Below, piece by piece: positions 1 through 7,674 of a stretch of DNA of 64,000 bases (position 1 is its first letter; the number at the start of each line of letters is the position of its first letter). A model generated the notes under the pieces. It saw only the letters and a program-made list of their open reading frames with translations, was not told where the DNA came from and ran no database searches. The translations under genes and the position numbers were made by a program. The stretch comes from Macrostomum hystrix. Lineage: Eukaryota; Animalia; Platyhelminthes. The DNA lies in contig CATNEN010000025.1 in NCBI GenBank assembly GCA_950097015.1, positions 2,542,001-2,606,000 on the forward strand, read 5' to 3'.

Positions 1-1150
1 ATAGGGCAATGACCTGCTCATTGACGAGAGGAGGGATAGGGCAATGACCTGCTCATTGGTTAGAGAAGGGATAGGGTAATGACCTGCTCATTGATTAGAG
101 GAGGGATAGGGTAATGACCTGCTCATTGGTTAGAGAAGGGATAGGGCAATGACCTGCTCATTGACGAGAGGAGGGATAGGGCAATGACCTGCTCATTGAC
201 GAGAGGAGGGATAGGGCAATGACCTGCTCATTGACGAGAGGAGGGATAGGGTAATGACCTGCTCATTGACGAGAGGAGGGATAGGGCAATGACCTGCTCA
301 TTGACGAGAGGAGGGATAGGGCAATGACCTGCTCATTGACGAGAGGAGGGATAGGGTAATGACCTGCTCATTGATTAGAGGAGGGATAGGGTAATGACCT
401 GCTCATTGGTTAGAGAAGGGGTAGGGCAATGACCTGCTCATTGACGAGAGGAGGGATAGGGAGGGATTGGGTTAGTTGACCTGCTCATTGACGAGAGGAG
501 GGATAGGGCAATGACCTGCTCATTGACGAGAGGAGGGATAGGGCAATGACCTGCTCATTGACGAGAGGAGGGATAGGGTAATGACCTGCTCATTGATTAG
601 AGGAGGGATAGGGCAATGACCTGCTCATTGGTTAGAGAAGGGATAGGGCAATGACCTGCTCATTGGTTAGAGAAGGGATAGGGCAATGACCTGCTCATTG
701 ACGAGAGGAGGGATAGGGCAATGACCTGCTCATTGACGAGAGGAGGGATAGGGCAATGACCTGCTCATTGACGAGAGGAGGGATAGGGCAATGACCTGCT
801 CATTGACGAGAGGAGGGATAGGGCAATGACCTGCTCATTGACGAGAGGAGGGATAGGGTAATGACCTGCTCATTGATTAGAGGAGGGATAGGGCAATGAC
901 CTGCTCATTGGTTAGAGAAGGGATAGGGCAATGACCTGCTCATTGACGAGAGGAGGGATAGGGCAATGACCTGCTCATTGACGAGAGGAGGGATAGGGCA
1001 ATGACCTGCTCATTGACGAGAGGAGGGATAGGGCAATGACCTGCTCATTGATTAGAGGAGGGATAGGGCAATGACCTGCTCATTGATGAGAGGAGGGATA
1101 GGGCAATGACCTGCTCATTGGTTAGATGAGGAATAGGGCAATATCCTGCT
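1..1150. repeat. Minisatellite, 35-bp unit (ATAGGGCAATGACCTGCTCATTGACGAGAGGAGGG), ~32 copies, runs off window start; decays to ~1260
   Basis: Directly visible tandem units; each has a CAATGA-n5-TCATTG inverted repeat. Confidence 0.97.
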
Positions 1151-1331
1151 TATTGATTAAAGGGGATAGACAAATGACTTGATTTGTGATGGGGCAATGT
1201 AGAGGTTTGGGGTAATGACCTGGTCATTGATGAGAGGAGGGGTGGTGTAATGACCGATTTAATGAGCAGTGGACGGGTAAAGAGTGCTTAAGATAAGGAT
1301 TTGAGTATGAGAACTGGCGAAATGTGTGCCA

Positions 1332-2318
1332 TCAGGTCTTCTTCTGCTGCTTGTCCTTCCTGCAGTCAGGGCAGTACCATTTTCCTCGCGGCTCGGATGT
1401 CAGCTTGACGCATTTGAAGTGAAACCATTCGATGGCGCATCGGTCATTGTCGCAGGCGATCATGTCGCCGAAGGAGCCCTTATTGCAGATGCAGTAGCGG
1501 AGGGTCTCATCGTTGGCCGAACCGGAGCTGTGATTCTTCTGCTGTTGCTGTTGAGTCTTGGCCGACTTCTGCGACTGCGACGCCTGCTGCCGTTGCTGCT
1601 TCCTTGAAGCGCCGGCGGGCGTCTGCTGCTGCTGCTGCTGCTGACGCAGTTTTCTTCGCTTTGGAGACAATAGTCCACCAGTCGAAGCTGCGGCAGCGGC
1701 AGCGGCAGCGTCCCGACTGCTCGAGCTGGCATTGGAGGAAGCGGGCTCGTCCTTGTCGGAGGCTACAGTGGATTGTCTCCTCTCTCCGCCAGCCGAAGCC
1801 CGATGATGTCGATGACGCTGACGATGCTGGTGCTGCTGCTGCTGTTGCTCTGTTGAAGAGGCCGGGCTGCCAGTCGATGACGCGGCGGCTGCAGCGGCGG
1901 CGGCGGCAGCAGATGCCGCTTCGATTCGAGACAGGAGGTTTCGCCTACCGGCATCCAGTTGCATCCGGCGGCCGTCGATGAGGTCCTGGATGAGGCCGGC
2001 CAGTCGCATCTTTTCCTCGCCGAGTTCCTGCAGTCGGGCCAGACTGCGCTGGACGCTGTTAGTAGCGACGGAGTCGTTAATCGGCGAGGAACCAGACGAC
2101 GCCAGACGTTCAAGATCGGCGACGGAGGCGTGACAGCGGGCGTCTAGTTCGCGATACTGCGACAGGCAGGTTTGCAGATCGCCTGGAAGAGATTCGCAGC
2201 AATCTAGGACATCCTCCAGGTAGGCAGCCAGCAGGTGCCACTCAGGTGAGCCTGTCTCCAGGCCGCCGGTGGCCGCCGCGGATAGTGCGGCTGCTTCGCG
2301 ATCAGTTGCCGCTGCCGA
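1332..2318 (-). CDS. ING1: Inhibitor of growth (ING1/ING2-like) PHD-finger protein; single coding exon, start codon not present in contiguous genomic sequence
   Basis: N-terminal ING domain ([17 protein letters not shown]...[10 protein letters not shown]) and C-terminal PHD finger ([32 protein letters not shown]...GKWYCPDC). The ORF-track start is TTG inside the acceptor TTCCATTCGTTGCAG (AG at 2320-2319); an in-frame TAG lies 7 codons upstream. ING1 versus ING2 cannot be resolved. Confidence 0.93.
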
Positions 2319-2340
2319 CTGCAACGAATGGAAAGCAGAC
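2319..2340 (-). promoter_or_regulatory. 3' splice acceptor (candidate trans-splice site) for ING
   Basis: Minus strand GTCTGCTTTCCATTCGTTGCAG|TCG GCA GCG; pyrimidine tract plus CAG, phase 0. Confidence 0.7.
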
Positions 2341-2419
2341 TAATTGGGCCGCGAAGCAATGGGCCAAGGGTTGACGGGAAAGCCAGTTGCCTAACCCATT
2401 AAAGGTTAATCAGTTAATT

Positions 2420-4160
2420 CTTCAGGGTTTGTTGGTAAGCTGCTAAATCATTCAGGGTTTGTTGGTAAGCTGCTAAATCATTCAGGGTTTGTTGGTAAGC
2501 TGCTAAATCATTCAGGGTTTGTTGGTAAGCTGCTAAATCATTCAGGGTTTGTTGGTAAGCTACTAAATCATTCAGGGTTTGTTGGGAAAGCTGCTAAATC
2601 ATTCAGGGTTTGTTGGGAAAGCTACTAAATCATTCAGGGTTTGTTGGGAAAGCTACTAAATCATTCAGGGTTAGTTGGGAAAGCTACTAAATCATTCAGG
2701 GTTTGTTGGGAAAGCTACTAAATCATTCAGGGTTAGTTGGGAAAGCTACTAAATCATTCAGGGTTAGTTGGGAAAGCTACTAAATCATTCAGGGTTAGTT
2801 GGGAAAGCTACTAAATCATTCAGGGTTTGTTGGGAAAGCTGCTAAATCATTCAGGGTTAGTTGGGAAAGCTACTAAATCATTCAGGGTTAGTTGGGAAAG
2901 CTACTAAATCATTCAGGGTTTGTTGGGAAAGCTACTAAATCATTCAGGGTTTGTTGGGAAAGCTGCTAAATCATTAAGGGTTTGTTGGGAAAGCTACTAA
3001 ATCATTCAGGGTTTGTTGGGAAAGCTGCTAAATCATTCAGGGTTTGTTGGGAAAGCTACTAAATCATTCAGGGTTAGTTGGGAAAGCTACTAAATCATTC
3101 AGGGTTTGTTGGGAAAGCTACTAAATCATTCAGGGTTAGTTGGGAAAGCTACTAAATCATTCAGGGTTAGTTGGGAAAGCTACTAAATCATTCAGGGTTA
3201 GTTGGGAAAGCTGCTAAATCATTCAGGGTTTGTTGGGAAAGCTACTAAATCATTCAGGGTTTGTTGGGAAAGCTACTAAATCATTCAGGGTTTGTTGGGA
3301 AAGCTACTAAATCATTCAGGGTTTGTTGGGAAAGCTACTAAATCATTCAGGGTTAGTTGGGAAAGCTACTAAATCATTCAGGGTTTGTTGGGAAAGCTAC
3401 TAAATCATTCAGGGTTTGTTGGGAAAGCTACTAAATCATTCAGGGTTTGTTGGGAAAGCTACTAAATCATTCAGGGTTTGTTGGGAAAGCTACTAAATCA
3501 TTCAGGGTTAGTTGGGAAAGCTACTAAATCATTCAGGGTTAGTTGGGAAAGCTGCTAAATCATTCAGGGTTAGTTGGGAAAGCTGCTAAATCATTCAGGG
3601 TTAGTTGGGAAAGCTACTAAATCATTCAGGGTTAGTTGGGAAAGCTACTAAATCATTCAGGGTTAGTTGGGAAAGCTACTAAATCATTCAGGGTTTGTTG
3701 GGAAAGCTACTAAATCATTCAGGGTTTGTTGAGAAAGCTACTAAATCATTCAGGGTTAGTTGGGAAAGCTACTAAATCATTCAGGGTTAGTTGGGAAAGC
3801 TACTAAATCATTCAGGGTTAGTTGGGAAAGCTACTAAATCATTCAGGGTTTGTTGGGAAAGCTACTAAATCATTCAGGGTTTGTTGGGAAAGCTACTAAA
3901 TCATTCAGGGTTTGTTGGGAAAGCTGCTAAATCCTTCAGGGTTAGTTGGGAAAGCTACTAAATCATTCAGGGTTAGTTGGGAAAGCTACTAAATCATTCA
4001 GGGTTAGTTGGGAAAGCTACTAAATCATTCAGGGTTTGTTGAGAAAGCTACTAAATCATTCAGGGTTTGTTGGGAAAGCTAGTAAATCATTCAGGGTTAG
4101 TTGGGAAAGCTAGTAAATCATTCAGGGTTAGTTGGGAAAGCTACTAAATCATTCAGGGGA
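2420..4160. repeat. Minisatellite, 30-31-bp unit (TTCAGGGTTTGTTGGGAAAGCTACTAAATCA), ~56 copies
   Basis: Directly visible tandem array between ARMC6 and ING. Confidence 0.97.
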
Positions 4161-4714
4161 AGGTTGAGAAGTCGCAACATTATTCAGTTTCTGGCCAGCT
4201 ATATTATAAATAGAAATCTAAATGACATAAGATTGAGACAAAGGCAAGCAAGCAAGGTGTGAAGAGCGCTGCAATGTAGACTGCAAGCTTGCCTTTGTAT
4301 TTTGAGTTAGTTACTTACTTCTGTACTTTTTGGAACTGATAGCAAAACAAAAATGCCTGGAAAAAATTGATTTGTAGGCTTAAGGGGTAAAAAAACAAAA
4401 ATTATTCGACATTTAGTATTTCGGTATGATAACTATTCAGTAACATGTCGGCATCAGATTTATCTGGAATCAAGAGTCTAAACGAAGCAAAAAAGCAGTA
4501 AGGGAGGGAATCACAAGAAAAAAGGTGTATGCAGACACATCTTAGTCTCGTCTGTATAGGATCCATTTTTAGTAGACACCGTTGTGATTTTTGTTTTATT
4601 ATCGCAGTCGAACACTGCTTTAATAAATTGTTAGGCATCAAGGCTTGCTTATTTCTGTTTATTGCTAATAAACTTGAAATATTAATAATCAATAATAAGG
4701 TTGCTATCTAGACG

Positions 4715-5378
4715 TTTATTAACGCCATCTAGATCGACGATGAGGCCATCTAGATCTACTTTGAGGCCATCTAGATCTACAATGAGGCCATCTAGATCTA
4801 CTTTGAGGCCATCTAGATCTACAATGAGGCCATCTAGATCTACTTTGAGGCCATCTAGATCTACAATGAGGCCATCTAGATCTACAATGAGGCCATCTAG
4901 ATCTAAAATAAGGCCATCTAGATGTTCAATGAGGCCATCTAGATCTACAATCAGGCCATCTAGATGTTCAATGAGGCCATCTAGATGTTCAATGAGGCCA
5001 TCTGGATGTTCAATGAGGCCATCTGGATGTTCAATGAGGCCATCTAGATGTTCAATGAGGCCATCTAGATGTTCAATGAGGCCATCTGGATGTTCAATGA
5101 GGCCATCTAGATGTTCAATGAGGCCATCTAGATGTTCAATGAGGCCATCTGGATGTTCAATGAGGCCATCTGGATGTTCAATGAGGCCATCTAGATGTTC
5201 AATGAGGCCATCTAGATGTTCAATGAGGCCATCTGGATGTTCAATGAGGCCATCTAGATGTTCAATGAGGCCATCTAGATGTTCAATGAAGCCATCTGGA
5301 TGTTCAATGAGGCCATCTGGATGTTCAATGAGGCCATCTGGATGTTCAATGAGGCCATCTAGATGTTCAATGAGGCCA
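4715..5378. repeat. Minisatellite, 21-bp unit (GAGGCCATCTAGATGTTCAAT), ~31 copies
   Basis: Tandem array containing the palindrome CATCTAGATG; source of the spurious (MRPSRCS)n ORF. Confidence 0.96.
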
Positions 5379-5461: not shown

Positions 5462-7674
5462 TTAATCGCCCCTAGGCAGCTGTCCGTTACGCCCTGTCCA
5501 AAGCATGGGCTCAAATTTGACATCGCAGCCAAGCGCCAGTAGGGCGGCTTTGGCTTCATCTTTGCACACAGGCAGCAGGCTATTGATCAGAGGCTCCATG
5601 CCATGTGCTAGCAGGGCTGGTCGAACAGAACCGCCAGACTCGGCGGACTCGTCGCGAGCGGCGGCATTTCGAACGCAGAGGCAGAGCTGACGCATCAGGG
5701 CCGCGTCTGAGCGGTGAAGGCCGGCGATCTGGGACAGCAGGACAGCGCCGGGCAGTTCGACTGTTAGGCGACGCGCCGTAGCCGGCTGGCGAAGGCACAG
5801 ATTTGCGGTTAGACCGAGGAACTGGTGCACAACGTGTGCCTGCTTGACGTATCTGTGCGGTGAGTGTAGAAAGGGCGTTTGTGTTGATGAATCGGAGGTG
5901 TAGAAGGGGCGGGTGTGTTCCTGAATCGGAGGTGTAGAAGGGGCGGATGTGTTCCTGAATCAGAGGTGTAGAAGTGGCGGATGTGTTCCTGAATCAGAGG
6001 TGCAGAAGGGGCGGATGTGTTCCTGAATCAGAGGTGCAGAAGTGGCGGATGTGTTCCTGAATCAGAGGTGTAGAAGTGGCGGATGTGTTCCTGAATCAGA
6101 GGTGTAGAAGGGGCGGATGTGTTCCTGAATCAGAGGTGCAGAAGGGGCGGATGTGTTCCTGAATCAGAGGTGCAGAAGTGGCGGATGTGTTCCTGAATCA
6201 GAGGTGTAGAAGTGGCGGATGTGTTCCTGAATCAGAGGTGTAGAAGTGGCGGATGTGTTCCTGAATCAGAGGTGCAGAAGTGGCGGATGTGTTCCTGAAT
6301 CAGAGGTGTAGAAGTGGCGGATGTGTTCCTGAATCAGAGGTGTAGAAGGGGCGGATGTGTTCCTGAATCAGAGGTGCAGAAGGGGCGGATGTGTTCCTGA
6401 ATCAGAGGTGCAGAAGTGGCGGATGTGTTCCTGAATCAGAGGTGTAGAAGGGGCGGATGTGTTCCTGAATCAGAGGTGTAGAAGGGGCGGATGTGTTCCT
6501 GAATCAGAGGTGCAGAAGGGGCGGATGTGTTCCTGAATCAGAGGTGCAGAAGGTCATACTTGGCAGCCACATCGATCAGCTCGGGCAGGTGTACCGCCGC
6601 GGCCCGTTTAACCTGGTCGTTTCGCGCCAGATTGCGCAGCAGTCCCATGCCGGAGGCGGGCAGCTGAGGCTCCTGACTGTGCGCGCAGACGGCGCCAACA
6701 ATGAATTCGCAGGCTCCTAGTTCCAGGGCGCGCTGGCAGAATTCGTCGCGAACAGCCAGACAGGCCAGGGTGTCAAAAACTCGGGCGACAGTCTTGCGCG
6801 ACTCCGGTCGATTGTAGCGTCGGCATAGTCGCAACAGCAGGCCCAGAGCCGGAGTATCGGACATCACCAGCCTGGCCCGTTCGTGCGCTTGACCGACAAC
6901 AGCTCTGACGTCATCGTCGAGAGTTAGCAGACGGAATAGCCGACAGACTTGACACACCAGCGCCTCCCGGCCAGGTCGGGTTCTCAATAGGCGGGCTAGC
7001 ATAGGCACTAGGTCGTTAAGAACCAACAATTGACGATTGGCTTCGTTCAGCACGCACGCACTACCGAGTACGCCCAGCAGAGCCGTCAGTTCGGATGCGG
7101 TCTCAGCTGTGCCTTCGTCTGTCTCGGCAATCTCGTCAACCTCGTCATCGCCAGCCTCGGCAACGCCATCAGAGTCGGACAGGCCAGCCAATGTCTTGGC
7201 TCTATCTAGCAGAGCAATCAACTGGTCCGATTTCAAAGCGTCCGACTGCTGCTTCAATAAGCGACGAAGGCAGCGCAGAGCGGCGCAGACAATCGTTACC
7301 CGACGACCATCGGCCAGACGGAGTAAAGCGGACGGTGAGCCAAGATTGGCGGCCAGAACTCGCTGCGGTAGACCGGCCACCAACTGGGCTGACAATTCGC
7401 CAATGCACTTGATAACATGAGCTTCCTGCTCTGGGGTTGAATCACCGGTGACTTCTGTCGCCGCAGCTTCTATCAAGGCGTTGACAGCCAGCACTAGCGG
7501 ATGCTGGCCATCTGGATACAGTGGCAGATCGCGCATGATTAGGCCAAGCGTCACATTCTGCGCCTCGAGCTGTTTAACAGCGTCCTCAACGGCCTCATCT
7601 GGCGGCATATCGAATTCGTCTATGTTCTCCCGAACTAGACTGTTGTAGGTGTCCTGCGATACTGGGCGGGACAT
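5462..7674 (-). CDS. ARMC6: Armadillo repeat-containing protein 6; join(7674..6560, 5852..5462), 501 aa
   Basis: N-term MSRPVSQDTYNSLVRENIDEFDMPPDEAVEDAVKQLEAQ and C-term AKAALLALGCDVKFEPMLWTG match the ARMC6 family termini. Donor AA|GTATGA (6559) and acceptor CACAG|A (5853) are phase-2 compatible; total 1506 nt. Acceptor TTTCAG lies 8 nt before the ATG. Confidence 0.9.
5875..6552. repeat. Intronic minisatellite, 34-bp unit (GTTCCTGAATCAGAGGTGTAGAAGGGGCGGATGT), ~20 copies, fills the ARMC6 intron
   Basis: Tandem array spanning nearly all of intron 5853-6559. Confidence 0.96.

Follow-up and report, generated by a model that had tools for sequence, protein, structure and literature searches.

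A Macrostomum hystrix ING1/2-like gene that opens at a splice acceptor and probably takes its start codon from the spliced leader

The window, meaning the whole stretch of 64,000 nucleotides analysed here (G000:C25:2542001-2606000 of the 220-Mb Macrostomum hystrix assembly), contains an ING1/2-like gene whose whole coding part is one minus-strand exon of 328 codons, 2318-1335 (Table 1). The ING N-terminal domain of the predicted protein scored 49.3 bits against a Pfam cut-off of 23.9 and covered positions 1-98 of the 102 in the profile, while the PHD finger scored 25.6 bits against a cut-off of 24; the linker between them is basic and rich in Q, A and S. The exon opens in phase 0 at TCG, directly behind a 3' splice acceptor that reads ttccattcgttgcag/TCG GCA GCG (slashes mark splice junctions here and below); the AG occupies 2320-2319, and exon sequence starts at 2318. 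The TTGCAG of this acceptor matches the [T/C]TNCAG motif of M. lignano trans-splice acceptors (motif from PMC8629364). An in-frame TAG closes the frame seven codons upstream, and an in-frame scan found no ATG between this TAG and the acceptor. The earliest in-frame genomic ATG is codon 104 (in the sequence EEKM), which comes after about 78% of the ING domain, so that a start at Met104 would delete most of it. Both the closed frame at a phase-0 acceptor and the late first Met had been claimed in a preliminary description of this DNA, and both were confirmed. Within the first 330 nt of the exon, the sole other ATG belongs to an out-of-frame ATG TCC TAG. A start at TTG 2324, taken by the list of open reading frames, was rejected because its position is 5' of the acceptor and it is missing from the transcript contigs described below.

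Table 1. Features of the ING1/2-like locus in window coordinates, and the spliced-leader gene loci of the assembly
Feature	Position	Strand	Basis
Single coding exon, ING1/2-like; no ATG before codon 104	1335..2318	-	ORF, Pfam and homologues
Stop codon TGA	1332..1334	-	Sequence
3' splice acceptor ttccattcgttgcag	2319..2333	-	Sequence, motif, contig breaks in X2, X3 and X4 at 2319
In-frame TAG closing the ING frame, 7 codons upstream of the acceptor	2340..2342	-	Sequence
First in-frame genomic ATG, residue 104	2007..2009	-	Sequence
Out-of-frame mini-ORF ATG TCC TAG	2204..2212	-	Sequence
ING N-terminal domain PF12998, residues 33-124	1947..2222	-	Pfam, E = 8e-13
PHD finger PF00628, residues 276-319	1362..1493	-	Pfam and solved structures
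32-codon N-terminal extension SAAATDRE..., without ATG	2223..2318	-	Coding-type conservation in M. lignano
31-bp minisatellite, 56 copies, presumed outron or intergenic	2421..4158	.	Repeat search
21-bp minisatellite, 32 copies, just 3' of the ARMC6 stop	4706..5378	.	Repeat search
Last coding exon of the upstream same-strand gene ARMC6; stop 5464-5462	5462..5858	-	ORF and M. lignano alignment
Spliced-leader gene loci L012-L014	rDNA-type arrays on C17, C15 and C42		

The best named homologues of the window protein in a word-based protein search were ING1-like proteins of Lingula and Polistes, and the solved structures closest to its PHD finger were ING1-like (E = 2e-22) and ING2 (E = 4e-22). Only one ING1/2-type locus was found in the assembly, three further loci matching chiefly via the PHD region, and judging from the sequence the window gene is most likely the Macrostomum orthologue of ING1/2. 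ING1/2 proteins are PHD-finger readers of histone H3K4me3, and in ING2 this mark is caged by Y, S, M and W residues, all four of which were found in the window PHD finger by alignment. As in human and mouse ING1/ING2 (2g6q, 2qic, 1wes), the ING domain is N-terminal, the linker after it is basic and of low complexity, and the PHD finger is C-terminal; unlike vertebrate ING1/ING2, whose genes possess ATGs of their own as well as alternative first exons, the window gene is a single ATG-less exon. The ING4/5-like paralogue L007 (G000:C38:10786812-10789976) has its own genomic ATG right at its ING domain (MMYFEDYMEMIEGLP), so the ATG-less state appears to be specific to the ING1/2-like gene. When the N-terminal 145 aa served as query in a word-based protein search, there were no matches, and thus no transcript-derived fragments spelling residues encoded by a spliced leader (SL).

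Of the 3143 nt between the ARMC6 stop and the ING acceptor, 2411 (77%) consist of two minisatellites, as the preliminary description had held in calling this region mostly minisatellite. The identity of ARMC6 was taken from its M. lignano counterpart, which carries PF27652 and to which window positions 5858-5466 and 6894-6542 align. When the region was compared by blastn with the two M. lignano loci, the conserved parts were the ARMC6 exons and the ING exon only, with no conservation between the ARMC6 stop and the ING acceptor. The spacer contains two large minisatellites in both species, with unrelated units; those of the M. lignano locus L009 lie at 2502-3278 and 3859-4934 and have units of 30 and 21 bp. 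Arrays at this site appear to undergo turnover, with the acceptor and the exon remaining in place.

One explanation for the missing start codon is that a cis-spliced exon, between ARMC6 and the acceptor or farther upstream, holds the real ATG. Between the acceptor and position 5600, eight GT sites are preceded by a phase-0 frame that reaches back to an ATG without a stop, with contexts that include CCT/GTGTGC, AAT/GTCGAA and TTA/GTAGCT, but the GT[A/G]AG donor motif of M. lignano (PMC8629364) was found at none of the eight. The GTAAGT donor at 4318-4313 is, as had been noted before, preceded by a phase-0 stretch that is not ATG-open. Taken together, the GT-site scan and the blastn comparison point to no convincing upstream ATG exon for ING. 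A bacterial promoter and terminator scan, of a type not meant for eukaryotes, returned no matches.

The M. lignano orthologues show the same arrangement. Two proteins of this species, BOX15_Mlig033326g4 and Mlig015258g3, are labelled "partial" in NCBI (76% identity over the best local match), and the RNA-based ING gene models are likewise 5'-partial. In both M. lignano loci (L009, L010) the order is ARMC6, ING, MIP on one strand, and a MIP gene was also found downstream of the window by tblastx. The 5' ends read ...cctgtcactccgcag/TCG GCG ACT GTG GCA GAC CGC..., with the acceptor position and phase 0 common to the window gene and both homeologs, an in-frame TGA 14 codons upstream and no ATG. 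The preliminary description had asked whether related species also lack an ATG at this acceptor, and both orthologues do. Similarity between the species begins exactly at the acceptor (ccgcag/TCG GCG): sequence upstream of the AG could not be aligned, and TCG GC follows it in both.

The gene was matched in five sequencing sets, none of them on record as RNA. Four of the five come from one 2020 study and have contig sets of 43-50 Mb. The data sets behave as transcriptomes, their data type being a guess. When the contigs were aligned over window positions 1170-2420, one contig each in the sets X2, X3 and X4 fitted 1883-2319 on the gene strand, with record positions 22-458, 22-458 and 11-447, respectively, so that 21, 21 and 10 letters past 2319 are unlike the genome. 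Contig depth at 2346-2420, upstream of the acceptor, was zero. The orientation follows from three records, of which record 9 overruns the 1170 end and records 17 and 25 have surplus beyond the masked CAG repeat at 1610; in minus-strand records the record start therefore corresponds to the higher coordinate, and the surplus letters lie 5' of 2319. Because the G at 2319 is compatible with the acceptor AG as well as with the final G of a leader ATG, the junction can be read as AG/TCG. We infer that the surplus letters are the SL from their shortness and the zero depth upstream, not from the letters themselves. That two runs end at 21 letters is as would be seen when a k=31 graph meets sequence common to many mRNAs.

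These contigs also bear on the cis-spliced upstream exon, of which the 21 foreign letters would be the 3' end. It is favoured by the eight ATG-open GT sites and by the fact that the identity of the junction letters is deduced, but a unique cis exon should assemble beyond 21 nt, whereas two runs stop at an identical 21 nt, and the RNA-built M. lignano models are equally 5'-partial. Given in addition the lack of a donor motif at the eight sites, the high minisatellite content and a conservation that covers the N-terminal extension and not the region upstream of it, we regard such an exon as very unlikely. A second explanation, that the ATG was lost by mutation from a decaying or non-functional copy, would fit the absence of a genomic start codon and is hardly credible: 328 codons are open, both domains score above the Pfam cut-offs, the gene is transcribed in at least three samples (X2, X3 and X4), the assembly has no second ING1/2-type copy, and the ATG-less state is found in both M. 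lignano homeologs alongside many synonymous changes.

At least one contig (X2, record 9) extends out of the ING 3' UTR, beyond 1170, in the direction of a 35-bp array. This minisatellite of 35-bp units occupies most of the 2.6 kb that separate the ING stop from the next same-strand gene, MIP/aquaporin (window 1-1169 and L011, G000:C25:2534001-2542000).

The 35-nt SL of M. lignano (PMC8629364) occurs in 23 exact copies in the M. hystrix genome, most of which belong to arrays on C15, C17 and C42 that repeat about every 11.6 kb. SL RNA gene copies (L001, L012) read ...TTGCATG/GTAAG, and the array SL genes read gccgtaaagaCGGTCTC...TTGCATG/GTAAGacacc..., followed by an Sm-like site, ATTTTTAG. As the gene copies read ATG/GTAAG, the leader ends in AUG directly before the donor, and no stop codon was found in the 35-nt SL in the frame of this terminal AUG. 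The SL letters just before a junction would read ...AATTTATTGCATG, and the leader letters matching the reading at 2319 would end ...CTCAATTTATTGCAT(G). A search of Rfam 15 (E <= 1) gave no family matching the Macrostomum SL RNA gene, which is thus missing from Rfam. The exact SL copies L002, L003 and L004 (G000:C3, C7) have ccgtaaaga before them and unrelated non-GT sequence after them, and look like cDNA-derived SL relics, not SL RNA genes.

To what extent the exon is translated upstream of the ING domain can be read from the 32-codon extension. Compared with M. lignano, it has 12 identical, 10 synonymous and 10 non-synonymous codons and one in-frame 3-nt indel. Codons 1-16 are merely loosely conserved, while across codons 17-32 the two species share 13 of 16 residues, with the synonymous changes GGC/GGG, CTG/CTC and ACA/ACG. 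The synonymous changes, the in-frame indel and the residue identity together argue that the extension is translated and that the start lies upstream of codon 17. No near-cognate codon precedes the CTG at codon 20 in the window, and codon 20 is CTC in M. lignano, where near-cognates are found at codon 4 (GTG) and codon 13 (CTG), none of them common to both species. The sole initiator that both species would share ahead of the conserved stretch is accordingly, on this comparison, the putative leader AUG.

Alternatively, the mRNA could be trans-spliced and the SL AUG skipped, with a shorter protein started at a CUG (codons 29, 30 or 34, kept in both species) or at Met104. The context of the SL AUG is weak, with U at -3 and U at +4, which makes leaky scanning possible, and a start at the conserved CTG CTG of codons 29-30 would still yield a complete ING domain. 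Nevertheless, the 11-residue stretch upstream of the CUGs is invariant despite the synonymous changes listed above, as expected of translated sequence, the CTG at codon 20 is not kept in M. lignano, and a Met104 start would remove most of the ING domain. Moreover, ribosomes normally use a first AUG that stands about 35-45 nt behind the cap, and its function in schistosomes was shown by Cheng et al. 2006, as cited in later work. We therefore consider skipping of the SL AUG unlikely. The mini-ORF ATG TCC TAG holds the first AUG that would be met after a skipped SL AUG and before Met104.

Since the exon begins at an acceptor and has no start codon of its own, the protein most likely starts at the SL AUG. 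The pre-mRNA would carry a long, repeat-rich outron, maybe produced by read-through from ARMC6, that is removed on splicing, and trans-splicing would join ...UUGCAUG to UCG GCA GCG. The SL AUG would then be in frame, with no intervening stop, and would be the first AUG met by the scanning ribosome as well as the only one ahead of the ING domain. The predicted product is M-SAAATDRE..., a protein of 329 aa made up of M and 328 exon-encoded residues. Initiation of the ING1/2-like protein at the SL AUG after trans-splicing at 2318 is in our judgement probable; both the identification of the foreign leader with the SL and the use of its AUG by ribosomes are steps that we infer. Without trans-splicing, an AUG-started full-length ING cannot be made. 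The SL-AUG interpretation of the preliminary description, together with its length of 329 aa, thus stands, supported by SL genes ending in ATG/GTAAG, by the contig breaks at the acceptor and by the M. lignano arrangement. Of the objections that it had itself foreseen, an organism without SL trans-splicing is countered by the SL RNA genes and the 23 SL copies, and an upstream exon with an in-frame ATG by the eight GT sites, which all lack a GT[A/G]AG donor.

The gene order raises the question of whether ING is expressed from an operon. The raw distance between ARMC6 and ING is 3.1 kb in the window and 2.5 kb in M. lignano; adjusted for repeats it is 732 nt and 661 nt, respectively, which is below the 1-kb operon threshold (PMC8629364). 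ING is possibly an SL-resolved operon gene, perhaps transcribed by read-through from ARMC6. A more far-reaching version, in which ING, as gene two of a conserved ARMC6-ING-MIP polycistron, depends strictly on trans-splicing for its production and leaky scanning to Met104 adds a PHD-only isoform, is in our view quite unlikely. If true, one mRNA would give rise to two antagonistic readers, in an animal for which trans-splicing of 85% of stem-cell genes has been reported.

The mechanism is known, and this gene is probably a real, ordinary further example of it. Its particulars are that the product is a nuclear chromatin reader and carries no targeting presequence, that there is no alternative full-length isoform and that the state is kept in two Macrostomum species. 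The finding does not open a new question, and its value lies mainly in annotation: such genes remain "partial" in the output of gene finders and in the NCBI M. lignano record, or are given an internal Met as their start, which here would cost most of the ING domain, whereas treating exons that open in phase 0 at an acceptor as SL-AUG genes would give the correct 329 aa. It would also add a free-living flatworm case, conserved in two species, to a mechanism mainly documented in schistosomes.

That a flatworm SL AUG can serve as initiator was reported by Cheng, Cohen, Ndegwa & Davis 2006 (J Biol Chem 281:733), as cited in PMC12582326 and PMC9851317. According to PMC12582326, a terminal ATG is a key feature shared by all parasitic flatworm SLs that have been reported, and in S. 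mansoni 28% of trans-spliced transcripts have the SL AUG in frame, with more than 40 cDNAs that need it ('slORFs'; PMC9851317). Like the downstream genes of SL-resolved M. lignano operons (PMC8629364), the window gene belongs to a same-strand ARMC6, ING, MIP order kept in two species; by raw distance it is unlike them, and its match by adjusted distance is a classification and not a demonstration. Unlike the published S. mansoni cases, it concerns the free-living Macrostomum and an ING1/2 chromatin reader, with SL-AUG translation deduced here. Like the S. mansoni SL-AUG mRNAs, however, it combines an SL ending in AUG, a phase-0 acceptor and the absence of a genomic AUG before the domain with a second-species orthologue of identical arrangement.
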